A stretch of 64,000 bases of DNA from Utricularia gibba (lineage: Eukaryota > Plantae > Magnoliophyta), in the NCBI GenBank assembly GCA_002189035.1, contig NEEC01000002.1, positions 4,402,001-4,466,000 of the forward strand, read 5' to 3'. The translations under genes and the position numbers were made by a program. Positions 11,641-63,159 of this stretch are shown one piece after another; the first letter of the stretch is position 1; every line of letters starts with the position of its first letter. Below the pieces are notes generated by a model that searched no databases, was not told where the DNA came from, and saw nothing but the letters and a program-made list of their open reading frames with translations.

Positions 11641-12121
11641 GATTCGCCGATATTGGCTCTTTCGGGAAAATCGGTGAATCAGAAATATGACTACACCGAT
11701 ATCCTGCATGCCGTTTCTCATGATTGAGTCTCGAACCAACCTGAACCGATTTCTGTGCCACGCGTCAGCTCCCGAGCGGGCCGCGCTTTTTCCTGCTCGC
11801 TCTGGGTATTCTAAACGTCGTGTCGTTTCGTCTCCCGAACGTCTCCATTATAAATATGCGTTCCCCCTATCATTCCCCTCCTTTGGTGTCTTTGTTACCT
11901 GTAAGGTTCCTGCGTTCTCCATGCTCTGTTGCGCTCGTCCACCGCTCGACCGTTGTGATACCCATTGGAAACCGCCAGTTTTTCAGGTACCAGCCGATCT
12001 TTCGTCTTTTCCGTTTGGTCCTTTGGGATTTTTGGTGAGTCACCTTTATCTTTCTGAGTCATTCGCCCTTTCTGACTTCTGCCTCGCTCTAGGGTTTGGG
12101 TCCTCTTTTGATTTTTCGAAA

Positions 12122-13443: not shown

Positions 13444-14372
13444 TGACTTTTCTTAACTTGGTGTTTTTCCCCCTGCTGTGGGGCTTTGTCGAACATTTTC
13501 ATTATCCCGGTTCAAGATCCTTTTCCAGTTTACTCAGTTTTTGTGCATCACTGTTGCCCTCATTGATTTCCTCGTTTAATATGTTGCGTGATTCGCTGAT
13601 CTCCTAGTGGGACTTCTCTGCGTGCATGCGTGCTAAGGCTATGACTCGGAACCCCCTCGCGAACTGAATCGTTTCTTCCATTTAGGTGGATCTTCCACAT
13701 CTTTCAGCAAGATTTATTCCGATTGTATTTGCTGCTTCAAGGCCTAGCGGTGAGTACCCCGCTTTGGGGCTTAGTCATGGATCTAGGGGGAGGGTGTCTT
13801 CTTGCCAACCCTTTGGTTGGGCTTTTGGGTTTTGGTTTGCCTTAGTATTTCCTCATACGAGCTGAACCGTAGCTAGGGAAGTAGGTCGGAACCCCTCATG
13901 GGTTGAGCGACTTCTCCAATCTGAAAGGACCCTCTTCTAGCCGAACCCCATTGTTTTGAACATGGGTGGATTTGCTTTGGGTGCTCTTGCCGTCTCGAAA
14001 TTTCGACAATAAGGTCAATACTTAAGGGCTTTTCGGGGCTTACGCGTGCGGTTTATGGAAACCGGTGCCCGAATTGTACCAGGGCTTATTCTTGTCCCTA
14101 GCGCCTGGGTTTGGGAGATCCCATACCCCCGAGTTGACTTGCTGGATCCCGTAGGGGATGCCGAATTAGGTGATTACCCTGGGCTTACGTTACTTGGCCA
14201 GAGCTTATGGTTTAGATCTTTGAGGGTCTGTCTAGGCTTACACGACTCGGCCAGGGCTTATGGTTTCGTTTACCCATCTCCACTTTGGAGGAATTTATAG
14301 GCGCTTGAGTGTTTTGAGGAAGAGAATACCGAATTCTGCGCAAACCTGTGATGGAGATTGATATTGAGCCAG

Positions 14373-19320: not shown

Positions 19321-19374
19321 GATCAACACTTAGTGGCTGACTCTCGTGGATTTCTCGAGTGGGGTTGTAGATCT

Positions 19375-19392
19375 GCCCCACGGTGGGCGCCA
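19375..19392 (-). other. Primer-binding site of element B, complementary to the 3' 18 nt of tRNA-Lys(CUU)
   Basis: TGGCGCCCACCGTGGGGC, 3 nt inside the 5' LTR; matches the recalled plant tRNA-Lys 3' end GCCCCACGGTGGGCGCCA. Confidence 0.88.
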
Positions 19393-19395
19393 AAA

Positions 19396-19915
19396 TGTTG
19401 GGGGTAAAATCGAAATCCGATGGAAGGCCGATTTTAGGGTGATAAGTGCAATCGGGAATGTCACACTTAGTTACGTTTTTCACGGTTGATTCCATTCAAA
19501 TGAAAGTAAGCGAAGATTTTTACGTGGAAACCGCCGGAAGACGGAAAAACCACGAAGCTATCGGAGCTCGCCAGAAAAGATTTCCACTAGACGGAGGTGG
19601 CGAAGAAGAGGATACAAGTTGAATAATCCTTCAAGTTCAAAAAAAATAATCATCATCCTTTCTCCGTAATGGTTTCTCCTATTTATGGAAGAGCCCAATC
19701 TGGCCGAATCCTGATGTCTGCCAATATCGGTTGCTTTATGCACCTGCTATACGATCTCGCTTTTCAGATTTCGGCCGCCTACTATGCCGTGATTCGGCCA
19801 CTTTTCAGACTGTGCCTCTGATTTGCATCATTCGGTCGACTGACGCGATCCTATCAGAACATCTCTTGGCAGCTTTTCAGAGGTCGGCTGATTATACCTG
19901 ATTTGTACCCCCTCA
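19396..19915 (-). repeat. 5' LTR of element B
   Basis: Direct repeat of 11108-11628, adjacent to the PBS. Confidence 0.95.
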
Positions 19916-27660: not shown

Positions 27661-30600
27661 AGGCCCATTAGAGTCAGTTGGGAGTGTTTACGATTGGCCT
27701 TCAGCGGGCCCAGTCCCAAAATTACATGTCTGCCAATTTCCTTGGGCAATCTTAAATTGCATCAAAAAAAATTTCAAGTTTTATCATTTTGATAAAATTG
27801 GTCTCTACTTTTTAATATAAATTACGTAATTCGTCTTCGTTGGCAAAATCAACTCCCAAACTTTAATGCATACGTATTAATAATCTTCAAAATTTTACAT
27901 TTTATGCATTTTTTTATCCTTCACTGTTTCAACACTGAGCACAATTAATCTCTAATTAGAAATGGGCAAAAGATCCAACCCCTTGGATACCCACCCCTAC
28001 CCAACTTGTGAAGGTCAGATTTATAGTGGACAAGGGATGAATATGGATTTTATAATCTTAAACCCATGTTGGGATGGTGCACGGATGGATTTTTAGAAAA
28101 AAATATTAATACTCGCTCCACATACCTAGCCTATAAACCCATTTCTTAAAAAAATAATTGTAACAAATTTACGTGTTTTGAAAATAACATGACATAGATA
28201 TGATGAGCAACTCTATTAAAAATTTATATATACTTCTATTACCATATTTTTTATTCCACTTTTATTTCTAGTTTTCTTTTCTCTAAAAAAGAGATGATGC
28301 TCTTCAATAGGAGCTAAGTTGGAGGGAGATTCTGATGCAAATAGGTAGGCTGAGGACTACGAAGATTGGAGAACTTGGTTATCACAAACAATTTTTATGA
28401 TGTAGAATTTCAAATCAAAGAAAGTAAGATTTCTTTTCACAATCTCTTCTTATGTTCATTGCATCACTTTTATTTTCAGTGGTATGATTTCAGATGAAGA
28501 AAATTCTATCATTAGTAGCAAAATTTGGTACTCCTTCTATTATGGGTGAAAATTGGTTGAGTGGGTTGAGCCGATTTTCTGGTTTTGGATGTGATCGGAA
28601 AGGCAACTTTTTTGTATACTTCTTTTCGTGATCTGTTCGGTTTGACCGGGTGAATTGAATGTAGTCAAAGATTTTTTTACGCCAAAACCACCGTAAGACG
28701 TAAAAACCATGTAACTGTCGGAGCTCATCGGAGAAGACTTCTACTAGACAGAGGTGGTCGAGAAAACGATACAAGTTGAGGAGTTTTTTTTTTTTTTGGT
28801 TCCCCCCCCCCTCCTCTTTTCTTTAGAACTTCTCCTATTTATAAAAGAGGCTGCTCTAGCCGATTCCTTGCTTCTACAGGTGTCGGTTACTTTTGCGCCT
28901 GCTATGCAATCTCGCTTTTCAGATATCGGCTGCTTGTTCTGCCGTAATTCGGCTGCTTTTCAGACTGTGTCATATGGCCACCGCTGTCAAATTTCTGATA
29001 CATAGCAAGCTATCGACTGGCGTTATCCTATCAGGGCTTCTTTTGGCAGCCTTTCTCAAACCAATCATCCCCAGCTGATTTACACCCCATCATTCAGCCC
29101 CTCTGATTTATCGATATTGACCTTTCCAAGGCAAGTCGATGGATCAAAAGTACCGCTATACCGATTTCTGGCGTGCTGCTTTTCATGGGTTAGTCTCTAG
29201 CTGATTTAGACCGATTTCTATGCCACGCGTCGTCTCCTAAGCGTGCGACGTTTTTTCCCGCTCATTCTGGGCACCTCAAGCGCCGTGCCGTTTCGCCTCC
29301 CGAGTACCTTTTCTATAAGTATGTGCTCCTCTCGTCACTTCACCCCCTTTTGCTTCCTCTGATCACTCGCGGGATCTTAGCACTATTTGTGCCGCGTCAC
29401 TCTCGTCTGTTGCCTGCGCCGCCGTACTTCCACCCCGAACTGTGAATTTTCAGGTACCAGTCAGCTCTTCACACTCTCTGCTGGGCTTTTTTGAGGGTTT
29501 GGTTGGATTCTGATAACACCATTTTTATTGTGTTTTTATATATGTTTTTAAGTGTGTTTTGTAGGGTTAAATGTTGCTTAGGGTGCTAAAATGTCTTTTT
29601 TTGTGCATTTAGTCTGTTAAAATGTGTTTATTGTGAAAATAGGCTTAATTGTTGCCAATTGAGCCGAAAATTCTAATATTTTATCTAGTTTGTGTTTTAA
29701 GTCTTACCAGGGTAAGAGCTAGTACTGCAGCAACGTACTTTCCGCGTTGAGAAGTCAAAAAGGGATAGAAAAGATGTGCAAAAGCCACTTTCCACCGAAA
29801 GTAGCCGCCCTTTTGAAGAGATAAGATATGGAGCAGAGATCTCCCTTCTACAAGCATGAGGAAAAGATCAAGCATGAGCATCAAAAGAGAAAAGGAAGGG
29901 AGAGAGAAAAAAAGGAGTACACTATGCACGCAGAGTGTGCAGACAGCGAACAGGAGCAAGCGGGAGCGAGGAGAACGTTGTTTCTCCGGCAAAAATCTCC
30001 GGCGACCTCCAAATCTGCGTGTCTACACCACCTTTTCGGCTAGAACTTCGATTTCCAGCAGATCTCCAGCCCACAGAAGCATACTACAACTTTTATTTAC
30101 GCATTTTCTGCTCTTCCATTTCTGCGAGAACCTGTTATTGTTACTATTTTCATTTCTAAGCTTTCTGCTGCTTTTCGAAACCTTGCTGTGAACGGGAAAC
30201 TCGTTGTACAACTTGCTTTAGTTTATAAACATGTCTCTGTTTAAGCTTTTCACATTTGATTTTAAGCTTGATATGCCATTTGCTGTTCCTGCGCACGCAT
30301 ACTCTGTTTTCGCACACTCTTACTCTGTTTTTAAGCTTTCTTAAGCTGGGTTTAAGCCTATGGGCCCTGTTGAGTGACACAAGAGGCTGAACCAGGTGTA
30401 AAACTCATTCAAATTACTTTTATTTTATGTTTTCTGCATCTTTATATTAATTTCAGTCCCTTTTCACCCTTGCAACCCATTCCTTTCAGTCATTGTTATT
30501 TTAGATCTTACCCGCATTAGAACTAAATCCCAGAGAACGCCCTGTTTCAAGTAGTTGTGTTGAACTTCATAAAATTGCAACCATTCCCTGTGGATTCGAC

Positions 30601-30728
30601 CCTTGCTTGCCACGCTACATTAATTCTTGTGATTTGTGTAGTAGAATAGCTCGGTTTATAAATTTCTGTTGACGCTTTGAATGTACTAAACCACGACATT
30701 TAGCAACCCATTCCAAGGTTCATCAAAA

Positions 30729-30746
30729 TGGCGCCGTTGCCGGGGA
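30729..30746 (+). other. Primer-binding site of element D, complementary to the 3' 18 nt of tRNA-Asp(GUC)
   Basis: TGGCGCCGTTGCCGGGGA, 3 nt after the 5' LTR; the typical Athila PBS. Confidence 0.92.
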
Positions 30747-30790
30747 ATGGTGTCTGTTTATTTTTTTGTGGTTAATGCATTTACGTTCCC

Positions 30791-33700
30791 TTGCAGGTCC
30801 ACTTGAACCCCTTGGATTTTGAGGTCGAGAGGACTAAAAGAATAATGAGAAAGAAGCACAAACAAAGTCAGCAAGAGGCTAATTTGAGGGCCATAGAGAT
30901 GGCTGACAACCACTCAAATAATCAGCAGCTTGTGGATATTTTGGAGAAGACCATTGGGGAGTATGAGTCACCAGATCATACATATCGAGGGCATTGTATC
31001 ACCTTTCCTACAACAGCAATTAATCTGGAGTTGAGACCAGGGACCCTTGCCCTGTTTCCTAAGTATTATGGGAATAAGAATGAGGACCCTCACATGCATA
31101 TTGATGATTGTATTGCTGTTGGAGCTGTGCTGCGACCCAAGGACGTGACTGAGGATGATTTACTACTCAAAGTCTTCCAATTTACTCTTGAAGGATATGC
31201 CAAGACGTGGTTCAATACACTTGAACCTGGAAGTATTAGAAGCTGGATAGAAATGAAGAAAGCATTTTTAAATCAATTTTTTCCCACCTCTAGAGCAGAC
31301 GAAATTTGGGGCAAAATTGAAAATATTTTTCAGGATTATGATGAACCTTTACATGAGTATTGGAACAGGTTCACAACCCTTCTTTTGAGCTGCCCACATC
31401 ATGTATATGACAAATTGAAGCAAGTGAAGTGTTTTTTGAAGGGTTTGACTGCTGCTCAAAGAGATAAGTTGGATTCTACTGCACATGGTAATATGAGAAC
31501 TCTTACCCCATCTGAAGGCTGGGAGAAAATTAAAGAAATGGTTGGTCATTCCAGGCATTCTCAGTCTCGATCTCGAGCCCAGTGACAAGTGCATGAAATG
31601 GGGATATTGAGAGAGGATGAAGCAGCAAGAAATGACAATGATATTGCTGAATTGAAGGATATGGTGAAAGGTTTATTTCTTGTTCATGCAAAATCCATGC
31701 CTTGTGAAGTCTGTGGAAGTCTGGGACATATGCCTGATCATTGCTCCATGAAAGGAAATCTAGAAGAACCACTTGAAGGAGTGAATGCAATGGGGTACAT
31801 GAATAATAGAGCGGATTATTTCAAGCCCAAAAATGACCAGCGATTTGAGCCTATGAGGAATCATCCCAATTTTAGTTGGAGAAGCACCAACGTGGAGAAT
31901 CCACAACATTTGGGATTCACTCAACCGCAGTAGCAACCAGCTCCACCAATTTCGTTTCAACAAGGACAAAGTGTTCAGTAGGGGAATAGGTATCAAAGTA
32001 GGCCTTATCAACCCCCACATCAAAGAGTCGACCAGCCAAGCACTTTAGGTATTAAACCATCTCCTTCCACTGAAGAAATGATGAAGATGATGCTGGAAAA
32101 CATGGCCAGACATGATGCTGAACAAGCAAAAAGGGATGCTGAACAGGCCAAAAGGGATGTTGAATCTGAGAAGATGATGAAGAGTATTGAGAGGCAAATT
32201 GGCCAACTTGCTATAGAGCTCACTGAACTGAAAGGAAACTCACGGAAATTACCATCTCAGCCCAATGCTAATCCGAAGGCCAACATTTCTGCTATAGAAC
32301 TTTGTGGGGGAAAGCAGCTCCCTAACTGAAAAGCCCCTACAAGCCACACCAAAGCAGCAGAAGGGATTCAAATTAATTCTGAGGATAAGGTGCAGCATGA
32401 AAAGGCAGCAGGGGAACTTGTTTTTGAGATCAAGAAGACGCCTCCTTTTCCTGGAAGATTGCAAGCTTGAGCAAGGCAAGAAGAAAAGGACTCTATCATT
32501 TCAGCCTTGGACTCTGCAATGATCACCATGAAGGCTATAGATTATTTAAGGCAAGTGCCGAAAGGGATGAAAGTATTGAAGGACTTGTGTAGTTCGAAGA
32601 GGAAAAGCAAGGATGAGGACGTGATCAAAGTCAGTGCTCAAGTCTCCGCATACCTGACCCAACCGATGCCAGAAAAATGTTCAGACCTTGGAACATTTTT
32701 TGTTCCTATCCAGGTAGGAACTAAATTCATCAGCAGGGCAATGGCAGATCAAGGTGCTTCAATCAACATGATGCCTTATGAAGTTTATTTGCACTGGATT
32801 TGGATCCCCTCAGGCCAACCAACTTGAAATTACAACTTGCAACCAGATCCGTGGCCATTCCGGAGGGTATTGCTGAAGATGTTCTTGTTAGAATTTCTAA
32901 CATCTGTTATCCTTGCGATTTTGTTGTTGTTAAAAGCCCTCCAGCTAGGGTGAATGATAATACTTTAATTCTGGGACACCCTTTCTTAGCTATTGCAAAT
33001 GCTCATATTGATTGTAGGAAAGGAGCCATCACTATTGGCTATGCTGATGATATCTCCATCTTTAAGACCAATGAAGTTGAAAAATTCCCTGATGATTTTG
33101 CACCTGTGACTGGAGTTGATGTCGTTGATGAATTAGTAGAGGAAGTTTTTGATGAAGAGCAGCATGATATTCTTGAATTGTTTAGACAAGATGCTGAGCT
33201 CGAAGAGGAGGAAGCTGAGTATGTAATTCTTGAATGTTTCATTGAAGATAAAGACTTGGTGAAGCTTGGAGAGGTGACTAGTGTTGCATCACCAGAATTG
33301 AAACCCTTGCCTTCACATCTCAAGTATGCATTTATTGGTGACAATTCAAAGCTAGTGATTATTAGTGCTGATCTTTCTTGTGAAGAAGAGACGAAGTTGA
33401 TGGACGTTCTCAAGGCTAACAGCAAGGCTATTGGCTGGACATTAGATGATATAACCGGAATTAGCTCTTTTGTCACCATGCATAGGATTTATCTTGAAGA
33501 CGGAGCAAAACCGGTTAGACAACCACAGAGAAGGCTCAATCCTACCCTCATGGAGGTAGTGAAGAAGGAAATACAGAAGCTGTTGAAAGCTGGAGTGATT
33601 TATTCAATTTCTGATAGCACATGGGTAAGTCCTATCCACGTAGTCTCTAAAAAGACAGGAATTACCGTTGTCGAAGATGCTGATGGAAAGAAGGTGGCGA

Positions 33701-36206
33701 CGTGAGTTCAGAATGGCTGGAGGGTATGTATTGACTACAGGAAGCTAAATGAAGTCACAAGGAAGGATCACTACCCTCTACCCTTCGTGGACCAAATGTT
33801 GGACAGGTTAAGTGGTAAAAGTTTTTATTGCTTTCTTGATGGGTACTCAGGGTATAACCAGGTTGTTGTGGCACCGGATGATCAAGAAAAGACGACTTTT
33901 ACCTGTCCCTTTGGCACCTATGCGTACAAGAAGATGCCATTTGGTCTCTGCAACGCCCAGCGACTTTTGAAAGGTGTGTCACCAGCATTTTTTCGAATTA
34001 TATTGATGATTTCATTGAAGTATTCATGGACGACTTTACTTTGCATGGAACTAGTTTTGATGATTTTTTGAATCATTTAGAACTTGTTTTGAAACGTTGT
34101 GTTGAGAAAGATTTAGTTTTGAACTCTGAAAAATGCCATTTCATAGTATGCCAAGGAATTGGACTTGGGCATGTTGTTTCAGCAGCAGGTCTTACGGTAG
34201 ATCCTGCTAAGGTAAGTACTATTTTTGGTTTACCATATCCATGTGATGAAAGAGAAGTTCGTGCATTTTTAGGCCATGCCGGATTTTACAGGAGGTTTGT
34301 TAAAGGTTTTTCTCAAATTGCTCGACCACTAACCAATCTCTTGTAGAAGGATGCTGAGTTTATTTTTTCAGATGAATGTAAGCATGCTTTTGAAACTCTC
34401 AAGGCAGGCGTGACATCAGCTCCTATCATACAAGCGCCCAATTGGAGTGAACCATTCCATGTGATAACTGATGCATCCAACTATGTAGTAGGAGCTGTGT
34501 TGGGCCAGAAACTTGATGGAAAAGACACTGTCACCAGCTATGCCTCCAAAACCTTAGATAATGCTCAAGCAAATTACACTACAATCGAGAAGGAGATGCT
34601 AGCTGTTGTATTTGTCTTGGAAAAGTTCAGAAGTTAATAGTTGGGTAACAAAGTGATTGTCCATATAGACCATGCCGCCATCAAACACCTCATGTCCAAG
34701 AAGGAGACCAAGCCGAGGCTTATGAGGTGGGTCTTATTGCTGCAAGAGTTCAATGTGGAAATCATGGATAAGCCTGGGAAGCTCAATGAAGTTGCAGATC
34801 ATCTTAGCAGAATCGAGCAACCCATGGATGGTGTTCCAATTGTTGAAGAATTTCCAGATGAACAACTCTGTGCAATTAAGGCTGATGCAGGTAAGACTAG
34901 TGAACCATGGTATGCTGACATAGCCAATTATTTGTGCACTGGAGAGATGGCTTTGGACTTAAAGAGTTATGAGAAGGTGAAGTCGAAGAGTGAGAGTAAG
35001 CACTATTTCTGGGATGACCCCTATCTGTGGAAAAATTGTGCTAATGGTGTTGTGCGACGCTGCTTGACTGAAGATGATATTCAGCAAGTGTTGGCATTCT
35101 GTCATGCATCTCCTTGTGGAGTGCACCATGGTCCTAACCGTACTGCCAAGAAGGTGCTGGATTGTGGTTATTATTGGCCAACAGTTTTCAAAGATGCCAA
35201 GTCTTACTGTAAGAGCTGCGAGAACTGCCAAAGAATAGGGAATATCTCAAATCGGCATGAAATGCCAATGCAGCCAATTGTGGTTCCAGAAGTGTTCGAT
35301 GTGTGGGGAATAGACTTCATGGGGCCCTTTCCTAACTCTGATGGCTATGAGTACATTCTGGTGGCAGTGGACTATGTTTCAAAGTGGACAGAGGCAATTC
35401 CCACCAAGTCACAAGATACTCATTCAGTCATATGTTTTCTGAAGAATAACATCTTTGTGAAGTTAGGAACACCCAAAGCCTTGATCAGTGATCGCAGAAG
35501 CCATTTCTTTAACAAGGCTATAGAGAGATTGCTGAAAATCTATGGAGTCTGGTATAAGCCATCTAATTCTTACCACCCTCAGACCAATGAGCAGGCAGAA
35601 GTTTCTAATCGGGAGATCAAGCAAATTCTGGAAAAGACTGTGACTTCTTCTCGCAAGGACTGGAGCTCCAAGTTGAATGACACCTTGTGGGCAATTCGCA
35701 CAGCCTTCAAAACCCCCATCGGTATGTCTCCTTTTCGTCTTGTATATGGTAAACATTGCCATTTGCCCATTGAATTAGAGCAGAAGGCAAGATGGGCGAT
35801 CCAGTGAGTGAACTTGGAGATTCAAGGCAGTGGTGACTTGAGAAAGCTCCAACTTTCAGAGCTTGATGAACTAAGACATGAGGCCTACATGAGTTCTAAA
35901 ATCTTCAAGGAACGCACGAAGTAGTTCCATGAACGTCAGATCTTGCAAAAGCACTTTGAACCTAGACAAAAGGTATTATTATTTCAGTCTAAACTCAAAC
36001 TTCACCCAGGTAAACTGAAATCTCGTTGGGAAGGACCTTTTGTGATTAAACATGTGAATCCTAATGGTTCCATTGAGTTGTTTGATAGAGACATGCATAG
36101 CTCATTCACTGTGAACGGTCATAGATTGAAAGTGTTCCATGAGCTTATGATTGATGAAGTGGGACACCTTGTGGATGCGGTGGCATTCACTGAAATTCCC
36201 CTCTAA
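30791..36206 (+). pseudogene. gag-pol of Athila element D (decayed)
   Basis: Retrotransposon gag (FTLEGYAKTWF, AFLNQFFP), protease AMADQGASINMMP, RT FLDGYSGYNQ/MDDF, RNase H TDASNYVVGAVLGQ and integrase [10 protein letters not shown]. Multiple stops and frameshifts. Confidence 0.92.
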
Positions 36207-36569
36207 GTGATTCTGCACTTAAGTCTTACCCTAAGAATTATTCTAGGGTCCTCGATGGTGAGGTTACCAGTATTTTCTCCTTTTATTTTCGTTATGCATC
36301 TTTATTTTATTTATGCACTTTCAGTTATGCATTTTGCCTTTTGTACTGTTGCAATATGTTATTTTGTTGTTTCTTTCTGCCCCACTATTAGTTTCTAGTG
36401 CAATGGGCAATCTCTTGTATAGTTGCAACTCTTTCTTTATTTTTAGTTACACAAGCCCAGTGGGTTTAATTTTAAAAGGGTGGGAAACCCTTTTAAATCC
36501 TTCTTCCCAACAGTTACTCTCCCTCTTTTGCACCCCTTGCCTCTTTCTCAGAACCGTTGCAACTCTTCC

Positions 36570-38683
36570 ATGGCGAACCTCCCATCCTCAAACTCAACCA
36601 CCGTGCCACTGGCCACCCTTGACCACCCATCTGTTCCGACCGCCTCCATAACCACCAACCCAACCTCTGCCATGCCACGCACTATTCAGTTTTTTCCCCA
36701 ATCCGTTACCGCACCCTCTACCGCGAGCCCTAGGCCCTCTTCCGACGAAATGCTGCTCGCCACGCATGTAGAAGCTGACATTCTGCAGTTGCTGCTGAGT
36801 TTACGCGTAGCCCATCTTCATACCCTTGCCTCTAGCGCCTCATCACCCATTCCTATGCCACAACCATCCCCTGTCGCTGCTACACCCTCACCGCGCTAGC
36901 GTTCCCCACTACCGCGTGCTTCTCCGATCCCGAATCTGGTGGGTGTGCTTGATTTTTCCCTTACTTTGGCTACTCCTCGCCCTTCGACTACTGCCCCGTC
37001 CACCCACCACCGCACCCCTTCTCCACCTCTGGTGGTTACTATTTCTGCTACTCCTCCGCCACCGGAGCGCTTCACTCTTGGACCCCCGCTTACACCCGAC
37101 TCTCTTTACACTGATTTTCTTGACGACCAGGAAATTTCAGACCCCCCGGAGGGAGGTATTCCCAAGAGTGCGACCCTTGCTATCACTTTTGCTCCGGATG
37201 CTGTCCCAAATGCCTCCAAGAGCACTGCTCCAGCAAGGAAGACCACACAGTGGGAGGCAAAAAATGCTACCAGCAAGAAGAAGGGTATGGCTGAAGCAAG
37301 CAAGAAAAAGGAACCGGAAAAGGAACCTACCCGAGCACCCTCTGAGCCAACAAGAGAGGCAGCAGCTGCCAATAAAAAGAAGGACACGGCAACAAGCAAG
37401 AAGCCTCCAGCGAGGATGAGCCCTGAATCAACACCAGCACCCATCGAGACAATAAGAGAGGAAGATGCCACTATCTGAAGGGAACGACCAGAGAGAGCCA
37501 CCAAAGAACAAAAGAAACGGCCACGAGAGGAGAAGGAGGCTGGAAAAACACAGAAGGGAGGAAAAGCAAAACAACGCAAGGATGAGAAAGGTAAACAGAA
37601 AATGACTGAACCCCCTGTTGGCTCTACCATTTTTGCAGATAGGGACATCACTATGGTGGAATTGGAGGACTGCATTTTTACAGAGCACCTACGATTCAGC
37701 AGCAGAGCCCACAAGGAAAAGCTGGATACAATTTTTGGAGCAGGGCCAGAACCGGTGCGCTATCTAGACACTAAAACACTTCAGCACCTTGGCATTGAGC
37801 AAGAGGTAAACGCACGGTTAGCAGGAACACCGTTTCTTCATATTTTTCAGAACAAGCTGTCTGCCTGCGCTGAATTGTGTTATGAATTTTTCACGACATT
37901 TGTGTATGATGTGCCTGAAACTGTTTTTGCTCCTGGCATCATTCGGTTTAGATTGACTGGAATAGAGCCTTAGGATTTGTTTCTGAAAATGATTTGAACT
38001 CCATTGCTTTTCAGACTTCCATGTTTGATTTTCCTGGTGTTGAATATGTTGATGAACATGAAGTTTATGAGCAATTGACTGGGCATTATGAGGTTATCTT
38101 TAAGCAAAAAGGGACTAAGGCTAGTTTGGTAGTAGACCCTGTGTGGAGGATTATTCATGTGCTCCTTTCTACTTCCTTTTTCCAGCATCAACGCGCCTTC
38201 AATTCCTTGTTTAAAAATGAGACTTTTATTTTGTGGAGTTTAATGATGAAAAGGCCATTGAATGTTGGTGCTTTACTTGCTGATTTGATGAAGAAAGAAG
38301 TAGGGAATAGAACGCGTGTTTTGACTTTGCGGTTGTGAAACTGGGTCTCTTATTTGGCTTTAAAAGAATTTGGTCCTGATGCCTTAGAAAATGCCAACTT
38401 GCACATTGGACCCCCTCATCTCCCCATTAACTTATCTTTTCTCACAAATATTGGAATGATTCGACTTGCCAAAGGCAAGATCGTATTTTTATTAAGCATA
38501 GGTGAAGGAAACGTTGTGGAGCAGCCCTTGCCCAATGCTCAGGAAGCTTCTGGATCTGTTGGGGGGGGAAACACCTGTGAAAAGCGGAAACTGCTGTTGC
38601 TTGAGGGAAATTCGAGAGTTGAGAGGCACTATAGGCACCCTGAAGCTGTATTTAGAGACTGCTTGATTTACAGGCGGGCGTAA
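36570..38683 (+). pseudogene. Athila env-like/extra ORF (decayed)
   Basis: Follows integrase. Pyrimidine tract plus CTCAG acceptor at 36551 before ATG 36570. P/S/T-rich then K/E-rich region, then VRYLDTKTLQHLGIEQEV...ELCYEFFTTF...IRFRL resembling the recalled ATHILA ORF (PF03078). Confidence 0.75.
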
Positions 38684-40034
38684 GTCCTATTGTGCCTCCT
38701 AAACCTTGACTAGACTTTTTACCTTGTTTGTTTTGTATATATGTGTTCTTTGTTTTATGTGATTTAGTTTTCCTACTTGTCGTTGCACGTGTTTTGTAGT
38801 TGTGTGTCTGTCTTTTGGTGCCTTGAGTACTGCTGAGCATGTATAGGAATTTCGGATCATGCTTGAAATGTAAGATGCCTACCCCTTCGCTTCTGTGAGG
38901 ACTCGGCCTTTTTAGCTCTTACCTGCTTAAAACTTATATGAGGGTAGCCAGATTTTGTAGAAAAGTGCACGCATGCGGCCTCTGTTTTGCTCCATCTGCA
39001 CTAGGACTTACTTGTAAATTGCTTGTACGTGGCTTGCTAGTATGCGGATTTGTGGGTTGCATTGAGTTAGATACATAGACTGTGGCTGATGCACATAAAA
39101 GATTTTTGATGATAAAAGGCAAGCTTCAATCTAAAAAGTCGAGCTATATAAAAACAAAAAAAAAAGAGAAGAGAAAAGCAGCGAGGTACAAAAGGCAGGC
39201 ACACCAAAAAAGCCGTGCTGTAAAAAAAAATTCTTGTAGGAAATAAGAGCTTGAGGCTTAGACACTATGAACTCATTACTTTCCCTAAACATTTTTGTGG
39301 CCTGGCCAACCACACAAGGAGAAATAAGGATGAGCAAAGGGAGGGGAATGTGACTAACTCATAGTGGAAGAGTTCTCAAGTTTCTATGCTTTTGTTTAGT
39401 ACCTCCATGAGCATGACTTTCATTTTCAGCCACACTTTTGTATGTGTCTTGCAAGGTACAACTCATACATGTCACTGTTAGTATGCTACCGCATTTTAGG
39501 ATCAAGTTTGTACACGTGCAGATGTAATTTTTGAACACTTGAAGCATGCGAGTAACTCCTACTATCTATGCTTGAGTGAAACTGTTATTGCCCGCACTTG
39601 CTACCTCTCCTCTCCACTCCTTGCATGGATAGCATGACCAGAAACCTTTTCTTTGTCTCAGCAGACTCAACCTTAGATTTTCTGTTTTATTTTCTGTTTT
39701 ATTTTCTATTTTAGACTTGAGGACAAGTCTAGAGTCGTTGTAGGATAGTGTGATAACACCGTTTTTATTGTGTTTTTATATATGTTTTTAAGTGCGTTTT
39801 GTAGGGTTAAATGTTGCTTAGGGTGCTAAAATGTCTTCTTTTGTGCATTTAGTCTATTAAAATATGTTTATTATGAAAATAGGCTCAATTGGCAACAATT
39901 GAGCCGAAAATTCTAATATTTCATCTACTCTGTGTTTTAAGTCTTACCAGGGTAAGAGCTAGTACTGCAGCAACGTACTTTATGTGTTGAGAAGTCAAAA
40001 AGGGATAGAAAAGCTGTGCAAAAGTCTTACCAGG

Positions 40035-40640
40035 TTGGTCTGCCTGAAGTCTCCCCGAACGTCAATGATCACCCGCTGAGGAGGATCAAATAACAGAACT
40101 CTCCGGGGCTCAGGATCCGACTCCCTCTCCCCGATCGGAAAGAGAAAAGAAAAGATATTGCCTTCTTCCAATCTCAACGGAGCGCCGGCTCGCAGCACAG
40201 GGCTCCTTTCAGCGGGTGCTTCCACATCGACTACCCCGAATGAAGCACAAGGGGCCCTACTCCGATAGAGGTAGAAGACGATCCCACGCTCCCTCCGTCT
40301 TTGGTACCGGCCGAATTAAAGAGAATGTTGGACGAAGCTGTGCCGAGTCTTCGGGACGTTCAGCCGGAAATAATACTTAAGGGGATTTGGCAGGTACTGA
40401 TCTTTTGCCTTCTCAGTGTCATTCATAACAGATTTCCAACTTAGCAATTTTTCGTCAGGCCTTGACTTTTGGATGGGAGCTGGCCAAGAAAGTCGGGTCT
40501 CAACTCGAGGAGGTTGTTCGATTTCAGATGCAGATGGAGGCTCAAGATGCCAAAATGAAGTTCATGGCTGAGGAAGGGCAAGCTGGAGGCGAGGCTTCGA
40601 GGGCATGTTGGACCCTCAGTCGGTCCTCGCTATGATCTCC
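40035..40640 (+). pseudogene. Remnant of the antisense extra ORF of element C, with a 65-nt intron at 40394-40458
   Basis: DVQPEIILKGIWQ|ALTFGWELAKKVG aligns with DVQPDTVLEGIWQ|ALTFGWGVVREIG of element B. Phase-0 GT..AG intron. Confidence 0.75.
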
Positions 40641-43600
40641 CTCCTCCTCCTGAAGTTTAATTTCTTTATTTCTTCTTTTGCTGAACTAATGTTCTTGTCC
40701 CCAATTCTGGGGTTTTTGGATACTTTGAGATCCTGGTTTGGGATTCTTCTTTCTGATCTACTTATCTCTTGCTTTTATCGCTTTCGCCTTTACTAGTATT
40801 TATGAGTTGCATGATTCGCCAATCACCCGATTGAGCTTCTCGCTCAAGTACTATCTTATAATCGCCCGATTTCCGATAAGGACATGCACTGGAACCCCTT
40901 GGGCTTGAGTTATTTCCCCACTCCGAATGCGTCTTCAGCTGGTCGGATCTATGATTTCAAGGCATATCCGGATCAGCTTCGGGCACGTTTACTGTTCCAA
41001 TATTTGGTAGCATGCTCTTTATTTAGAGCTTTTTTTGGTGCTTTATACGAACGTCATTTAGGAAGGACTGGTACCCAAGTTGTGTTAGGGTTGGCCCTTG
41101 TTATTAGTGTGTGGGTTTTGGGAGGTCTTATATTTCGGGGGTGTCCTGATTCAGTTTGTTGTGCCCAGGGCGGGTTTAAGCCTGGGGGGGCTTACGCAGA
41201 CGGTTGCAGGGGATACTGATACCCGAGCTAACCCTTATCACTGGAGCCTAGGCTTTGGAGATCACATGTTTAGGAGAGAGCCTCGAGTTGGTTTGCTGTG
41301 CTCATAACGAGGCTTAGATTTAGAGGGTTCGCCAAGGCTTTTGTGTCCCGGGGGATGGGTGTCTTTTTGCCAACCCTTTGGTTGGGCTTTTTGACTTTGG
41401 ATTGCCTTAATATTTCCTTACGTGAGCTGAACCGGGAAGTAGACCAAGACCCCTCATGGGTTGAGTGACTTCCCCAATCCGATTGGGCTCTCTTCTGGCT
41501 GAATTCCCATTGTTTTGAACATGGGTAGATTTGCTTCGGGTGCTCTTGCCGTCTCGAGATTCGGCAGTAAGTTTTGAACTTAAGGGCTTTTTCGGGGCTT
41601 ACGCAGACGGTTTTAGGAAACCGGTGACCGAGTGGTACCAGGGCTTATCCTTATCATTGAGGCCTGGGTTTCGAAGATTTTACATTTCGGGGGATCCTGA
41701 GTTGATTTGTTGTGCTTGATAGGGGGTGCTGATTTAGAAGGTTTGCTTGTGCTTACATGACTTGGCCAAAGCTTATGATCTTGCTAACCCATCTCTGCTT
41801 TGGAGGAATTTATAACCATCCATGTGTTTTGACGAAGAAAATTCCAAATCTAGAAAGGACTTGTGATAGGGATGGTATTGAGCCGATTATGCATAGAATT
41901 TTCTTACATGTGTTGCGTTCTAAATATCTCGAGAATTTTCCCACATGTCATTGTGTTTGGATGCTTCGGAGCACCAATCTTCTTCCGAGAATTCCGTTGG
42001 GGATACAAACTTGTCGTAACTTTTTTTTTCGTTTTTCACGGATGAGCCCCTAGTCAGCTATAAATAGTCTGTCGTTTTTCTTCCATCAATTCCAACTCCA
42101 GTTTTTTATAAGTTAGCGTTCTCCCTATTTGTTTCCAGTTTGTTGATGACTTGGTTACGCCTCTTTCTTCGCAGCATCTCCTCATCGGTTTCGGATTCGG
42201 TTTCCATGTCCGGGGGATATTCCGGAATCAGGGGTTGCTTTTCCACTCGTCGTGCGGTCTTGGGTGTCTCCTCCTGTGTGTTGGAGTTCAGACCTGAAGT
42301 CGGAGAGAATTTCCGTTAGAAGGGCCTTCAGTTGCTCCTTGCTGATGATCATAAGACCGGGGTTTTGCTTCCCGGCACTTCCTTCGTGGATAGAATTCAT
42401 GGCCATCTTATTTTATGCCATGGTTGATGTTTGTTGAGCGGCTTCTGTGGATTTCTCGAGTGGGACAATAGATCGGCCCCACGGTGGGCGCCAAAAATGT
42501 TATGGGTGAAAATTGGTTGAGTGGGTCGGGCCGATTTTCCGGTTATGGATGTGATCGGAAAGACAACTTTTTTGTATACTTCTTTCCGTGATTTGTTCGG
42601 TTTGACTGGGTGAAATGAATGCATGCAGAGATTTTTTTACGTGGAAACCATCGTAAGACGGAAAAACCACGAAGCTGTCGAAGCTCGCTGGAGAAGACTT
42701 CTACTAGACGGAGGTGGTCGAGAAAACGATACAAGTTGTGGAGTTTTTTTTTTTGGTTCCCCCCCCCCCCCCCTTTTCTTCAGAACTTCTCCTATTTATA
42801 GAAGGGGCCGCTCTAGCCGATTCCTCACTTCTGCAGGTGTCAGTTACTTTTGCGCTTGCTATACGATCTCGCTTTTCAGATATCGGCCGCCTGTTCTGCC
42901 ATAATTCAGCTGCTTTTCAGACTGTATCATACGGCCACCGTTGTCGAATTTCTGACACATATCGGCCTGTCGACTGGCGTTATCCTGTCAAGGCTTCTTT
43001 TGGCAGCCTTTCACAAACTGATCATCCTCAGCCGATTTAGACCCCATCACCTTCAACAAATAATCAAGAGATAGAGTAGAATGATGAATATGATTATTCA
43101 AAATTGATAAATGAGGTTTGAAAACATTTTAAAAAGGCACAAATTGATGAAAAGTAGAAACCAATATGTAATTAATGCTCATCATCAATTATTTTTGAAA
43201 CAAAGAGTAGAACGTTTCTTAAAAGTATAAAAAGCATGGCGCTCAATCATATATTTTTTAGATATAAAAACGTTCAAACATTTCTTATGCTTGAAAGTGT
43301 CATTTCCTATAAAAAATTTTTTTCTATATATTGGAAGAAGGAGACCTAAAATATAAGCTTAGTTTGTTGGAAGAAGATTAGTTACTTTCAAAGATTTTGG
43401 AAGTTGAGAATCTTTCATGAGGCTATAAAATTATTTTAAGGTATTTATATCTTGTTAACATTATTTTTTTAATTTTATATAGTTATGATTTTTAGATTTA
43501 ACATTTAATAAATTTTTGTAGGGGCATGTTATCCTACTGCAAATTTATTATTTTCCTAACAATTTGTAATCAAATTGACCTTAAACAAATGAATTAATGA

Positions 43601-53226: not shown

Positions 53227-54319
53227 ATGATGTGTCGTTTGCATGCGATTCTACTTGCCGTGGGGGTCGTGGCCTCGTGTCTACGGGCTGCAGACTCAGA
53301 AGAGGTGGTGCTGAAGCTCCCCAGCCAGCGGATTCCGGTAAAAGTCACAAAATATACAGAGTACGCGGCGGAGCAAGCTAATGCTAAGGCACAGGAGTGG
53401 TCTTATGGCTTCTTGGGGGCTGTTAAAGACCCTTTTCTCACCTGGCTCAGAGGACGTGGACGTGGTCATGGTCATGGTCATGGTGGTCTGTGGATAACAC
53501 CCAAAATCCTGCTGCTATTTTCTTCCTCCTTAATTGCTTCCCTAATCTAACATCAATACAATACTAAGGAGACCCCTTACTTGCGTTTCGTGAAATACTA
53601 TGGAATGAACCTTTGATTTTTGTCACAGAAAACAATATTTTAAACATGGCAGGGGGTGTTCCAAATGCTGTTTTCACCGTCTACAACAACTGTCCGTACA
53701 CAATTTGGCCGGCGACTCTCACCAGCAGCGGAGGTCAAATCTCGTCCACTGGATTCGAACTTCCTTCGTGGCACGTCGCAACACTCGATGCTCCCCCCAA
53801 TGGTCCGGAAGAATATGGGCGAGGTTTCAGTGCTCTTGGGGCGGCAGCGGCTTCAGATGCAACAGTGGGGACTGTGGCTCTGGCCAGATTCCATGCAACG
53901 GTCACGGAGGCGCTCCACCAGCGACACTCGCCGAGTTCACCCTCAGCGGAAGCGGCAACCAGGACTTCTTCGACGTCAGCCTCGTCGACGGTTTCAACCT
54001 GCCCGTAAGAATAGATCCGGACGGCGGTTGCGCGTCCGCAAGCTGCCCTGTCGATATAAACGCTCAGTGTCCGAGTGAGTTAAGCATATGGGATAACAAC
54101 GGCGGAGTGATCGGGTGCAAGAGTGCGTGCGTGGCATTTAATCAGCCGCAGTACTGCTGCTCGCCGCCGAACAACACGCCGGATACTTGTCCGGCGACGG
54201 ATTATTCAGAGCACTTCAAGCGTCTGTGCCCTCAGGCTTACAGCTACGCTTTTGATGATCCATCCAGCACCTTCACGTGCGCTGCTGGAAGAAGCTACAC
54301 CATCACCTGGTGCCCATGA
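53227..54319 (+). CDS. TLP: Thaumatin-like (PR-5) protein, long 16-Cys type, with signal peptide and N-terminal extension. Probable intron 53486 to 53628 or 53652; 1-bp frameshift in the C-run at 53793-53798.
   Basis: AVFTVYNNCPYTIWP, PATLAEFTL, DFFDVSLVDGFNLP and CPQAYSYAFDD..STFTC. All 16 Cys and the R/E/D/D/D acidic-cleft residues present after adding one C. Exon-1 junction inferred. Confidence 0.9.
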
Positions 54320-55103: not shown

Positions 55104-58100
55104 TATAGATGTTCATGAGTCGGTTCTGGGTCGATTCTATGCCAACCCAGAACCGACCCAACTATAAAGACAAAGACCCGGAACCGATCTAGACCCGATT
55201 ACTAACCAATAGACTAAGAGTCATGGTTCTTTATCGGTTCTGGGTCGGTTCTTGGTCCTTACTGGCTTTGGTTTTTACTAAAAACATTGAATTTGAAAGC
55301 TTTTAAACAATATAAGAACAATGCATTAAAAGGCACAGAAAACTAACAAACACTAGGAAAAATGCTTATACAAATTAAAAGGGCTACGTTTAGTTTTGAT
55401 ACAAAAGTAGGGCTGTTTCACACATTTGAACACACATGTTTGTAAAAATCACATTGAAAACAACGTTTCTTGATATTTAATTGATTTGATGCAAATGTTT
55501 TCATAAATTTAATTTTGAAACAAATGTTTGTGAAAACACAATGTTTTCAACATAAACGTTCACCAAAAAATATATTTTGATTAATGTATTAAAAAAATAC
55601 AAATATATTAATACATTAAATATTAGATCTAACGTTTGCCTAAAAATACATAAATCAATTCAAAATTAGGGTTTTAATTTCAAACCCAAATTAACTTTCA
55701 TTCTTTCAGAAACTTCTACCGAGCTCCAATTCCAATGACAATCGTTGGTAAAATGATTCAAAACGAGTGTATATTTTTTATTTTAATATTTTTATTAGCA
55801 TTCGATCTTTAGATATGATTCGTATTGAGCGTATATTTTTTATTTTAATATTTTTATTAGCATTTGATCCTTAGGTATACTTTGGATCGAGTGCATATTC
55901 ATTTATTTTAAATTTTAATTAGCGTTCGACCCTTAGGAACAATTTAGATCGTGTATACATGACAACCCACACAGGCATGGTTTATGCATAAGCCACGCCC
56001 ATGTGCATACACACCAGCACCACAAGATCACACGGTCGTGGTTTACACCCGTACACACACAGCAGCATGACAATGCCACACGGGCATGGTTTATGGATAA
56101 ACCACGCCCATGTGCACATGCAACAGCATGACAAGGCCACACAGCCGTGGTTTATGCACAACCCACACCCGTATGCCCTTGTCATGTATACACAATCCAA
56201 ATTGCTCTTAAGAGTCGAGCGTTAATATAAATTTAAAATAAATAAATATCCACTCAATTCGAATCATAACTAAAGATCGAATGCTAATAAAAATATTAAA
56301 ATAAAAAATATACGCTCGATTAGAATTATACCTACGGATAGAATGCTAATAAAAAAATTAAAATAAAAAATATACATTCGATTAGAATCATAACCAATGA
56401 TCGAATACATATTAAAATAATTAAAATAAAAATACACACTCCATCCAAAGTATAACTAAAGATCGAATGCTAATAATATTAAAAACTAAGAAACTTTCAT
56501 ATTTATTATATGATTTAATAAATAACATATTTACATTATTTATATTTTAATAAACATAACCAATGATCGAATCCTTTTGATTTTTTCTTCAAATTAAAAA
56601 ATGATCCGAGTTCAAAAAACCGAACTTCACGCTTCAGTGGTAAATAAGCTATCATGAATGTTATCATCTTCAATCAGTTCGTCTTCAAGTAATGAGATTT
56701 GTTCCATATCTGCATCACAAAAAAATAAAATACGATCAGATTAGGCAATTAGAAAATATTATCAAATAATGATAATAAATAATGCTTCAGGCTTACCCTT
56801 GATCTCATTCCATAGCCAATATCTAGTGCACATTTGTGCTTCTAGAATATCTTCCTTCAACCTACTATGAAGAGTGGTAACAATTTTTCCACCAATACTG
56901 AAAGCGGATTCTGATGCTACCGTAGAAATAGGAATAGGTAGAATATCACTTATCATTTTCCTTAATGTAGGATGAGTGACATTGCCACTTACCGACCACC
57001 AATTAAGCACATTGAAATTTTCCATTCGTTGCAAGACCGGCTCTTTGAGATAGTAGTATAACTCTGATTCAAGGGGATTTGAAACAATTCTGAATTCGTT
57101 AGTCATGAATTGATCATACATCGACAAAGTGGACGATCCAGATCTACTCATAGTAACTGAACTAGATGCAGAAACATGGTCAACCGCCTTCAAAGATGAT
57201 AAACTCGAAATAGAAATATCTAGAGACTTGTATTCTTTTAAAAGATCTCTCACACTCTTCAACACTTCTTCAATATGAACACTAGCATTTTGCCATAAAT
57301 AAAAGGGAAATAGAATTCAATGAGCTTCATTTTATACCTTGGATCCAAAACCACAGGAACTCCTAAGATTAAATGACGAGTGTCCCAATATTTAGAGAAC
57401 TTGGCCGTCATCTCTTCTACCATTCCAGAAATGGTCTCATCTGCACTCTTAACCCATTCATTTAGTTGAATCTTGATTTCACAAACTGTAGGAAAAAATA
57501 AGTTGGTAATGGGGTGAAGAGTTTGTGAAAACAAGAGACTAGCCTTATAAAAAATCTCTGATTTGCCATAAATCTTATTAACTTTGACCCAATCATCTTT
57601 AATAGGAAGATATTTGTACTACCTCTCTATAAGTGCTACTAATGGAAACACATCTTTATAAAAAATAGCAGCTTGCAGCATCAAATATGTTGAATTCGAG
57701 CGAGTCTTGCAATCAAGTGTTAGCTTCTTGTCACCACCAATGCCAAATTGGTTTGTAGCATGATCAAATGTTTCAACTCTCTTTTGTGAAGGCGTCCAAA
57801 ACATAATACTCCGACGAATTTTTTCAATTGCTCTCTCAATCTTAGACAACCCAACTTCAACAATTAAATTCAAAATATGCGCATTACAACGCATGTGAAG
57901 TACTTGACCACCAAGAAGCAAATCTTTTGTTGAGAGCTTTAGGAGAATCAATTCCATCACAAGATCATTTGTTGAACAATTGTCAACAGTAGTTGTAGAC
58001 AACTTCCGATCAATATTCCACTTAATAAGCGATTGAAGCAACACATCTGAATTTACTCCAGTAGTATGTGGTGAAGGGACATAAACAAATCTGAAAAAAC

Positions 58101-58972
58101 GATAAGTAAATTGAGAGAAAAATCATAAACAAATCATAATGAAAATACTGCTAAATACATTCACTTATTTAAATGATATTAAAGGAACCTCAAGATACAA
58201 CTCTGTAGCTTCCAATCTTTATCAATAAAATGTGCCGTAACTGCCATGTATCCTTTCATATTATGATCGGCTGTCCACATATCTGTCGTAATTGCCACTC
58301 GATTTTTTGTTTTTTGTAACAATGAATAGCACTTGGATTTGTAACTCAGATGCATTTGACTAATATCCCTTTTGAGAGAATGCCGAGAAATCATAGAAAA
58401 TGCAGGATTCAGGCTTGCACAAAATCTTCTAAATCCGATATGCTCAACCATGACCAATGGATAATTATGTAAAACAACAGCTTTTGTGATTCCTCTAATG
58501 CCACTTTGGGATCAAAGTCAAACTTTTCAACTGCACCTTTTCTTCCAATCTGAAGAATAGATTTTCTAATATCCACTTTGACTTTTTTCTTGATATAAAT
58601 ATTATAGTAATGCTTCCAGAGACTTGAGGTGCCATTGGGTGTTTCTGTCGAAATGGTTCTCTTGCAATAATTGCATTCTGTCAACCATTTTTTTTCATCA
58701 AAGAATCTCCTAAAATGATTCCAAATATCTGAACTTCGTTTCCTTGTATTATTGCTTTGAGTCTCCTCTTCATTCCTTGTTGAGTCTGCTCTTAATCCAG
58801 AAGTATAGTCCTTGTCATTAATATCCGTTCCCAACCCTCTTATATTCTGCTCGTCTTCCATAATTTGTGGTCTTGTGGAAGATACAATAGAATCATCATT
58901 TGATGCCATCTCTTGAAATCTTATAATCAGAATGCACAAAATTAAACTAAACCACACAAATCTAATACACAA
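55104..58972 (-). mobile_element. hAT (Ac/Tam3, SLEEPER-like) transposon fossil; transposase CDS 58909-56627 with introns 58198-58091 and 56796-56710
   Basis: BED finger (DIWNHF..CNYCK..GTSSLWKH), catalytic TTDMW / VDNCSTND / STVASESAFS motifs and dimerisation domain. GT..AG introns seen. Several frameshifts. AACCG/ACCCG subterminal repeats near 55120-55260. Confidence 0.88.
55757..56480. repeat. Foldback structure: inverted arms built from a 62-bp AT-rich unit around a 213-nt GC-rich spacer of 109-bp (60+49) repeats
   Basis: Perfect inner ends gtgtatacatgacaa (55951-55965) and ttgtcatgtatacac (56179-56193). Unit starts at 55765, 55827 and 55889. Confidence 0.85.
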
Positions 58973-61040: not shown

Positions 61041-61599
61041 GTATTCTATGCTATTAAGATTTGAGTATTCTTGACTGATGTTAAAGCAATGGTTTTTGAT
61101 AGTATTGTGCCTGAATTTTTAAATCTGTTAATACTTTATTGAAGTGTTTTATTGCAGCAATACAATTGATTCATTGAGACGATATTTTTGGAGGTTTGTT
61201 ACAATAACTAAGCAAATTGCTTTTTGATAATATTGTGCCTGAATTTTTAGGTCTGTAACTGTAGTATTGAAGTTTTTTATAATAACATTGTTGCTGATTT
61301 ATTGAGGTGATTTTTATGGGTCTATTACACAAGTAATTTAAGATCTGTTATAGTATTATATTTGAATGTGTTTTTAATAGTATTATGTATGATTTTTTAA
61401 GCTTTGTCATACAAGTATGCTTGATTGGTTAATGTCAGTTACAATAGTATTGTTGATTCATTGTGATAGGTATATCATGTTGTCATGCTGTCATAGTCAT
61501 TGATTAACTAGGAAGGCCAATGCACAATTATGTAGACACCTACTATTATGTAGACTCATACAGGGGGCTATATGATTAATCGCTACATGATGTCCATTC

Positions 61600-63159
61600 A
61601 TGCACAAGAGGAATCTATTCACGCACATTTGAGTGATAACATGACATGCACACTAGTACTCTTGTGGCTCATACATCTGAATTTTATCAAAGTTGTTTAT
61701 GTTTACCATTGGTGCTGACAAAGTTAGTTTTATGTTAGTCTTAGCTAGGACTTGGGGGCAAGTCTTGTGTCGTTGTAGCATAGTGTGATGAAACACATTT
61801 TCTCTGAATTTTATAATACAAAATAGTTATATGTTATTGTGGTTTAGGTTAGATAAATGTGGTTTTTTATGTTTGTAAGAGTTTACGTTAATTTTGTATG
61901 TTTATGTTAAAAGTGAACTAAATCCTTTGATTTAGTCCACCACTTTTGTTACTTATGTTTGACTAAGTTCAGGAGGGAGATCAACAGAAAATCAGACTTA
62001 CAAACGTGTGGAACAAGTGAAAAAGGGGCACAATATCCGAAAGAGACAAAGAGCACTGTTTTGCTGCCACCTGCAGTCTGCAAGTTCAGGCTGGAAACAA
62101 TGCTGGGGTCAGGAATAGTGCAGTGGAGTGAAGGAGAGGAGATATTTTTTCGAAAAAGAGGGAGAGAACGACGGAAGGAGCACAGAACACACGCAAGGGG
62201 GCTTCTCGCCAAATGCAAAAAACACCAACCAGAAGAGGGGAAGAAGGTCTTCATCGTCAAGAGCAGCACTAGAGCCCAGCCCAGCGCTACTATTCCGGGC
62301 CGTGAATAGTAGCAACCGGGCAACATAAAAGTCTTTATTTCCTTTATGTTTTCTAAATGTTTCGAGTTCTTTGTACCTGACTTGCTTACAATGTTTCTGT
62401 CCTTTTCGCCAACTTATCTGAATGAAATCATGTTTTATTTTCCAAGTATGAGTAGCTAAAATCTTAAGGATGCCTTAAAGTAAAGTATGGTGATGTGTGC
62501 TTAGGGTTAATAATGAAATTTATGTTTGTTTCTTAGCTCTTGTTTCTATTAATTCATGGGTAGACCTGAGGAGAGGAACAAGTAGCTTCACTACTTAGAT
62601 GCTTGATTTAGAGGTAGACCAAAAAATCAAGACGGGAGTAGTAGGTTTTAGTCCGGGGTAGAACTAGTAGTACCGGGTAGACCTAGTTTTATATGTTTTG
62701 CATGTGGGTAGACCGAATTGCAATGTTGGTTATGATATTGAGGTCTGACTTAGCCGAAAATATGATGAATGACTTGGGTAGATTTAGGATATTTGAAGTT
62801 GTGAGTATAGAAACATGGTAAATTAAATTAAGGATCTTAGCATTACACCACCTACAGACCCTTAAGGTATCTTTGTATTATTTTGAGTTAGAACTAGTAC
62901 TTGTTACCTTTCGCATTGAAACTTGATCTTATTTACCGAACTTGTTTACCACTGTTGGTCCGAGGTTAGACTAAGACCACTGTTATTCCGAATTATGCAT
63001 TTACTAAAACATTTAGCAAGTACAAGCTCTTCGTGATCGACCCCGAAATCTGCTATATAAGTTTTCTAAATTTCTATTTTGTGTAGATTAGGGCTTATAA
63101 ATTTATTTGATATTGATTTCTATTTTTATTGCAACGATATTAGGAATTTATGTTTATAA
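61600..63159 (+). mobile_element. 3' end of another Athila-type element 'E': 3' UTR remnant plus 3' LTR 61786-~63159
   Basis: LTR starts tgatgaaacac directly after a motif shared with element D (gacttg..caagtc..gtcgttgtag.atagtg). Family-type 3' terminus; no PBS follows. Confidence 0.75.

Follow-up and report, generated by a model that had tools for sequence, protein, structure and literature searches.

A tRNA-Asp-like block occupies the polypurine tract position of two Athila-type retrotransposons in Utricularia gibba

Two LTR retrotransposons in a 64,000-nt stretch of Utricularia gibba DNA (contig NEEC01000002.1, positions 4,402,001 to 4,466,000; hereafter the window), which we call D and E, carry a 17-nt block immediately 5' of the 3' LTR, at the polypurine tract (PPT) position, that agrees with nucleotides 1-17 of tRNA-Asp at all but one position. 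Judged from sequence comparisons, we put at roughly one in two the probability that this block marks where plus-strand synthesis is primed in a single Athila sublineage, a captured 5' end of the primer tRNA having taken the place of the usual tract in register. Below we describe the two elements and their junctions, compare these with junctions of related elements from other plants, and weigh the reading against four others.

D is a Ty3/gypsy element on the + strand (29511-40024). Its 5' LTR of 1215 bp (29511-30725) is followed by a primer-binding site (PBS; 30729-30746, +) identical to the FIDEL PBS that was assigned to tRNA-Asp, and by a broken gag-pol (30791-35807, +) in which Pfam matches to + strand ORFs follow one another as gag, RT, RNase H and integrase, all on the same strand. 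The polyprotein is 41% identical to that of an intact relative over 1550 residues, and since the comparison with this relative revealed two frameshifts and nine in-frame stops in gag-pol, D is dead. A post-pol region of ~3.9 kb (35808-39711, +) contains small ORFs and is U-rich just 5' of the hairpin described below; LTRs of over 1.2 kb together with a long post-pol region that holds an env-like ORF are an Athila trait, and none of the post-pol ORFs of D gave a Pfam match, the Athila ORF-1 family included. The 3' LTR is reduced to its first 274 bp (39751-40024, +), which agree with the 5' LTR at 93%. D's integrase shows 55-61% identity to proteins from elements with the same PBS and junction, and by its domain order, PBS, junction and best matches D is probably an Athila-type (non-chromovirus Ty3/gypsy) element. 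The window also holds two copies of a second LTR family, both in minus orientation (11107-19915 and 28540-43043), and D sits between the LTRs of the latter. In the 11107-19915 copy, the RT and RNase H ORFs lie on the + strand and the integrase on the - strand, and because of these mixed strands that copy is taken to be nested or mixed.

E is a 3' fragment. Its 3' LTR (61786-63142, +; the end, judged from the second copy described below, is approximate, at 63134-63142) begins with TGATG at 61786 and is preceded by an AT-rich, non-coding internal remnant with a 126-bp tandem repeat (61084-61746, +; the 5' bound is nominal). No 5' LTR, PBS or pol attributable to E was found within the window, and no protein likeness of the internal remnant to D or to the fetched loci of relatives was found. 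Part of the LTR (62403-63134) recurs on the minus strand at 72-73% identity (4224-2331, BLAST). This second copy belongs to an E-like LTR fragment (2331-4558, -) that is interrupted by ~1.2 kb of foreign sequence and has a large deletion relative to E; neither hairpin nor block was found beside it. Based on its junction and LTR termini, E is probably a 5'-truncated Athila-type Ty3/gypsy element. Upstream of the E remnant lie a hAT transposase remnant in several ORF pieces (56762-58972, -; BED finger, RNase H-like fold and dimerisation domain), adjoined by two arrays of 62-bp tandem repeats (55753-55938 and 56237-56481), and a thaumatin-family gene (53705-54316, +). Since the Pfam match of the latter lacks the first ~30 profile positions, the gene either starts elsewhere or has been cut. 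Elsewhere in the window, a phenylalanine ammonia-lyase gene (6282-8721, -) is spread over three ORFs in different frames and is a pseudogene or interrupted; its best matches, at 88-89%, are Lamiales proteins (Sesamum, Andrographis), which makes Lamiales the probable order of the host.

An earlier note on this DNA, made from the letters of the sequence, had described a module of hairpin, spacer and block at the PPT position, and our reading of both junctions, which belong to + strand elements, agrees with it. In E, the hairpin (61747-61766, +) has an 8-bp stem, formed by arms at 61747-61754 and 61759-61766 with one G-U among its eight pairs, and a 4-nt loop made entirely of G (61755-61758). A 2-nt spacer (61767-61768, +) separates it from the 17-nt block (61769-61785, +), which abuts the first base of the LTR. 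D has the same arrangement, i.e., a hairpin with an 8-bp stem and the loop AGGA (39712-39731, +), a spacer of equally 2 nt (39732-39733, +) and a 17-nt block (39734-39750, +) abutting the 3' LTR, which begins at 39751. Both hairpins are predicted by folding, with energies that are by themselves unexceptional (z = -0.7 and -1.6); the support for them comes from the covariation described below. A canonical polypurine tract is absent from both junctions: of the last 11 bases of the block, 8 are purines in D and 7 are in E, and the G-run that eight relatives have directly 5' of the LTR is missing. When up to three mismatches were allowed, the 17-mer occurred at two places in the window, namely D and E, against 0.03 expected, and none of 100 shuffles yielded two matches.

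The likeness to tRNA-Asp was confirmed against printed sequences. The 5' end of tRNA-Asp is printed as the PCR primer tRNA-Asp_1F, a string of 18 nt (PMC6521008), and small RNAs of 21-24 nt that start at the same end are filed as miR6300 in papers on soybean and peanut (PMC3519564, PMC5335773). The 3' end is printed as the small RNA miR8175 (PMC5335773), and the PBS of D (30729-30746) is the exact complement, over 18-19 nt, of the small RNA listed under that name. Since the printed acceptor-stem halves pair with each other, both printed ends derive from one tRNA. The miR6300 and miR8175 of many plant microRNA papers match the two ends of tRNA-Asp and are, therefore, probably tRNA fragments. 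Compared with the printed 5' end, the D and E blocks each match at 16 of 17 positions and read in the same sense as the tRNA; the sole mismatch is position 11 in both, as the earlier note had it. Agreement with the tRNA breaks off precisely where the LTR begins, and the tRNA beyond nt 17 differs from the LTR. Neither the D nor the E variant of the 17-mer was found in the literature searched. ARAGORN detected no tRNA gene in the window, and neither junction matched the Rfam tRNA model, even at E-values up to 10; a complete tRNA-like fold is, therefore, rejected. The second LTR family of the window served as a control; it has a different PBS and an ordinary purine tract, without a copy of the acceptor strand of its primer.

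To place the two junctions among those of related elements, we used the integrase of D as a query, which returned thousands of plant protein matches, the best being ~59% identical. Loci were fetched via seven integrase-matched proteins and came from Hibiscus, Malus, Gossypium, Rhodiola and Erythroxylum, together with three loci on two ENA contigs, giving eight junctions, attributed to six other loci. These relatives are resident copies in plant genome assemblies, some of them of crops, and were compared unaltered, without consensus building, repair or joining of sequences; their 3' junctions were located from LTR pairs, and the Brassicaceae lie outside the sample. All of the fetched relatives have a PBS of the tRNA-Asp type, either exact or with 1-2 mismatches. 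Two of the loci, L007 and L008, are tandem Athila-type elements that share LTRs on one ENA contig; they have a tRNA-Asp-type PBS, the same junction module and, after the integrase, an extra RNase H-like (RVT_3) ORF. Such an ORF is given as a trait of the Tat clade (PMC6317226).

The junctions of the relatives all follow one plan: U-rich sequence comes first, next a purine-looped hairpin and a short linker, and last a G-run tract that borders the LTR, which begins with TGAT or TGTT. Together with D and E they form a set of ten that aligns almost free of gaps, the stem base falling in column 42 and the LTR in column 62 in every row; the distance from the stem base to the LTR start is 18-19 nt throughout. 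Hairpins occupy the same columns in all ten junctions, with 87% of the stem cells paired, and six of the eight pairs are altered on both sides in a compensatory manner (15 cells). None of 500 shuffles reached the observed pairing, and partners slid out of position paired at 27-48%. The stem was defined from D, which is itself one of the ten rows; the compensation is plain in the others. The earlier statement that the stem is kept through compensatory changes is thus upheld by covariation across the ten junctions. The hairpin is, however, not peculiar to D and E, as had been supposed, since Athila-type elements from at least five further genera of plants have it too, and on the evidence of this alignment it is a lineage-wide Athila-type feature.

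The block is distributed differently. The 17-mer was absent from the eight other junctions, even when 3-4 mismatches were allowed, and the D/E block fills the same 17 columns that hold the G-run block in these eight. Compared with nt 1-17 of tRNA-Asp, the eight G-run blocks match at 5-8 of 17 positions, which is not above the level at off-register offsets. Since the eight relatives combine a tRNA-Asp-type PBS with a G-run, the primer tRNA neither requires nor predicts the block. The 17-nt block appears to be a derived state of one sublineage, an equal-length, in-register swap of the G-run tract.

Plus-strand synthesis in LTR elements is primed by the stretch of RNA directly 5' of U3, and the 3' end of this RNA sets the first base of the LTR. 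Given that the block is located directly 5' of U3, its most likely job is that of plus-strand primer: RNase H would spare the RNA of the block on the minus-strand DNA, and the spared RNA would prime the plus strand, its 3' end setting the first LTR base. [quoted passage not shown] According to the literature, PPTs need not be all purine, and they co-evolve with their RT. The hairpin, standing at a fixed distance, may help to set or protect the plus-strand primer, either by making the polymerase pause, which would bring the coupled RNase H cut to the border, or through binding of Gag to its G-rich loop. The unvarying distance of 18-19 nt between stem and border suggests a part for the hairpin in positioning the cut, and in retroviral enzymes the polymerase and RNase H sites stand about as far apart.

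As to the origin of the block, a 5' fragment of packaged tRNA-Asp probably once primed in register, or else the polymerase switched templates to packaged tRNA-Asp, the resulting copy then becoming fixed. After such a capture, the ordinary constraint on a primer site would have retained the tRNA copy. The likeness ends at the joint between primer and U3, a joint that is unique to plus-strand strong-stop DNA, and this points to capture, while selection towards the tRNA sequence could also have given rise to an equal-length, in-register swap. We infer the priming role, the hairpin role and the capture origin alike, and the account of the capture is a reconstruction.

A rather unlikely, but not negligible, alternative is that host tRNA is in live use at this site. 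Either the 5' portion of tRNA-Asp or a 5' fragment in free form would land on the minus-strand DNA copy of the block and prime the plus strand. Both strands would then depend on a single tRNA species, and the ordinary RNase H-resistant tract would be dispensable. The sublineage would then have given up its RNase H-resistant primer, leaving the 5' end of tRNA-Asp to start the plus strand and the hairpin to measure the site. This would account for a 16/17 identity that stops exactly at the LTR border and for a block that is purine-poor for a PPT; small RNAs that begin at nt 1 of tRNA-Asp occur in the small-RNA sets of many plants, and tRNA-Asp is also the minus-strand primer of D. However, position 11 is mismatched in both copies, the printed fragments are 21-24 nt rather than 17 nt long and their extra 3' bases would be unpaired with the LTR start, and eight relatives with a tRNA-Asp-type PBS manage without the block. 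The word "mimic", which the earlier note had used of the block, is not supported in the sense of a present-day, tRNA-related function, of which our results give no sign. Two other readings were considered and rejected. Circularisation through pairing of the block with the 5' LTR/leader of D gave -16.9 kcal/mol, compared with -16.0 +/- 2.0 kcal/mol for shuffles, and a further hairpin that would join the block to the start of the LTR was predicted in E only, mostly from G-U pairs.

The comparison of D with E bears on whether one event or two must be assumed. By BLAST, the sole stretch shared by the two elements is a 48-nt island (~45 nt) at the junction. Aligned in register, the blocks are identical at 16 of 17 positions and the hairpin part at 16 of 21, while the flanks show 20-35% identity, which is the background level; the strong divergence of the LTR and UTR of E from those of D that had been noted earlier is, therefore, real. 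Conservation at the junction is far above that of the flanks, which argues for constraint. The earlier argument from conservation to function holds to this extent and does not extend to a present tRNA-related role. The presence of the block in two families with unalignable LTRs suggests a long compatibility with copying.

The same unalignable LTRs and UTRs could be held to favor two separate acquisitions of the tRNA-like block, and E had indeed been called an independent second instance; repeated capture is conceivable, provided that priming by a tRNA fragment is possible there. We consider this improbable. The two modules share identical bounds, a 2-nt spacer, the hairpin core and the deviating position, all in the same alignment columns, and LTRs within a lineage commonly diverge past alignment while junction motifs persist. 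Because the bounds and the spacer are identical, independence is less likely than descent. The D and E modules are thus best regarded as homologous parts of one lineage-wide junction, for which shared descent fits better, the block having apparently been kept by two related families of which D is the fuller representative.

Even less probable is an interplay with small RNAs, in which the transcript of the block would be a decoy, or its antisense a target, of Argonaute-loaded small RNAs derived from tRNA-Asp. Both ends of tRNA-Asp do occur as plant small RNAs, and 3' tRNA fragments are reported to target the PBSs of LTR elements. However, since block and 5' fragment share one sense, the transcript of the block cannot pair with that fragment; with the 3' fragment it can pair over 7 bases only, and the exact LTR border would be left unexplained. 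Lastly, although half-tRNA primers exist in some plant copia lineages (PMC6317226), it is most improbable that the block reflects chance or the PBS of a minus-strand element pairing with the 5' half of tRNA-Asp, considering that 16/17 identity to a given 17-mer is expected at ~3 in a billion per site and was seen twice at the same structural spot, that matches in bacteria and metagenomes lack the hairpin and occur at about the chance rate, and that the coding strand and ordinary PBS of D fix its orientation and contradict a minus-strand element.

Further carriers of the block were sought in sequence collections. An exact pattern scan gave no matches in viral contigs and none in metagenome contigs, and prokaryote genomes yielded one match, located in a coding stretch of 60% G+C, where the hairpin was absent. 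With a relaxed pattern, eight matches were obtained from metagenomes, none with the hairpin. The frequency of these bacterial and metagenome matches is about what a rough estimate predicts for chance, and they are attributed to chance. No carrier was recovered by a protein-guided scan of viral contigs, and a gag search for block-carrying relatives found none. A plant-type integrase, P0015, is filed under Salmonella enterica on a 2.8-kb contig, which is most likely contamination with plant DNA. A literature search for tRNA copies at PPTs likewise found none. A tRNA copy at the PPT position thus seems to be new to the literature; its role we infer.

Parts of the junction have been described before. 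D resembles Athila, Calypso and FIDEL in its Ty3/gypsy domain order, its tRNA-Asp PBS, its long post-pol region, its LTRs of over 1.2 kb starting with TGAT and the presence of a conserved motif just 5' of the 3' LTR. With reference to Wright and Voytas (2002), the FIDEL paper names an Athila-type "conserved core of the PPT"; ATHILAfinder (2026 preprint) uses the conserved internal-3' LTR junction as a seed. In the E hairpin, the 5' arm together with the loop is the counterpart of the FIDEL "core". Both texts, in the portions accessible to us, treat the motif as a PPT or as a seed and mention neither a covarying hairpin nor a likeness to tRNA. D and E differ from these Athila-type relatives in having tRNA-Asp nt 1-17 in place of the G-run. 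Sireviruses offer a parallel, as a vastly diverged plant LTR lineage with a fixed inverted repeat beside the terminal PPT; they belong, however, to another superfamily, and the repeat is of different sequence and lacks a tRNA-like block.

Two known uses of primer tRNAs also invite comparison. Yeast Ty3, in work attributed to Gabus et al. in 1998, is said to have a bipartite primer-binding site of which the 3' site is complementary to the tRNA. D and E resemble Ty3 in having a link between the primer tRNA and the genomic RNA's 3' end, within U3 or beside it. Whereas the 3' site of Ty3 is complementary to its tRNA, the D/E block has the same sense and is unable to pair with the tRNA 5' end, and position 11 of the block breaks a pairing of the D-stem type. 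A 3' site complementary to the primer tRNA, which marks a Ty3-type bipartite PBS, is thus lacking in D and E. The half-tRNA primers of copia-type elements, listed for plant lineages (PMC6317226), are a further case of an LTR element using a 5' piece of a tRNA. There, however, the site follows the 5' LTR and is complementary to its tRNA, whereas the D/E block precedes the 3' LTR and has the sense of the tRNA itself. Athila junction motifs and the Sirevirus inverted repeat at the PPT are already described; the restricted distribution of the block and its exact border are worth following.

Annotation tools that find Athila elements by a junction seed would miss the sublineage represented by D and E. 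The block also links the 5' fragments of tRNAs, plentiful in plants and frequently catalogued as microRNAs in error, to the biology of retroelements, and if the host tRNA were in live use, the very tRNA that starts the minus strand would start the plus strand as well. Plus-strand priming is, to our knowledge, the least understood step in the replication of LTR elements, and we know of no sequence rule for the primer tract. A sublineage in which a copy of its own primer tRNA has taken over from the G-run in register, with a hairpin standing in front at a constant distance, would provide a natural contrast to its relatives, and suggests that distance from a structure, and not purine content alone, may fix the site at which the plus strand starts.
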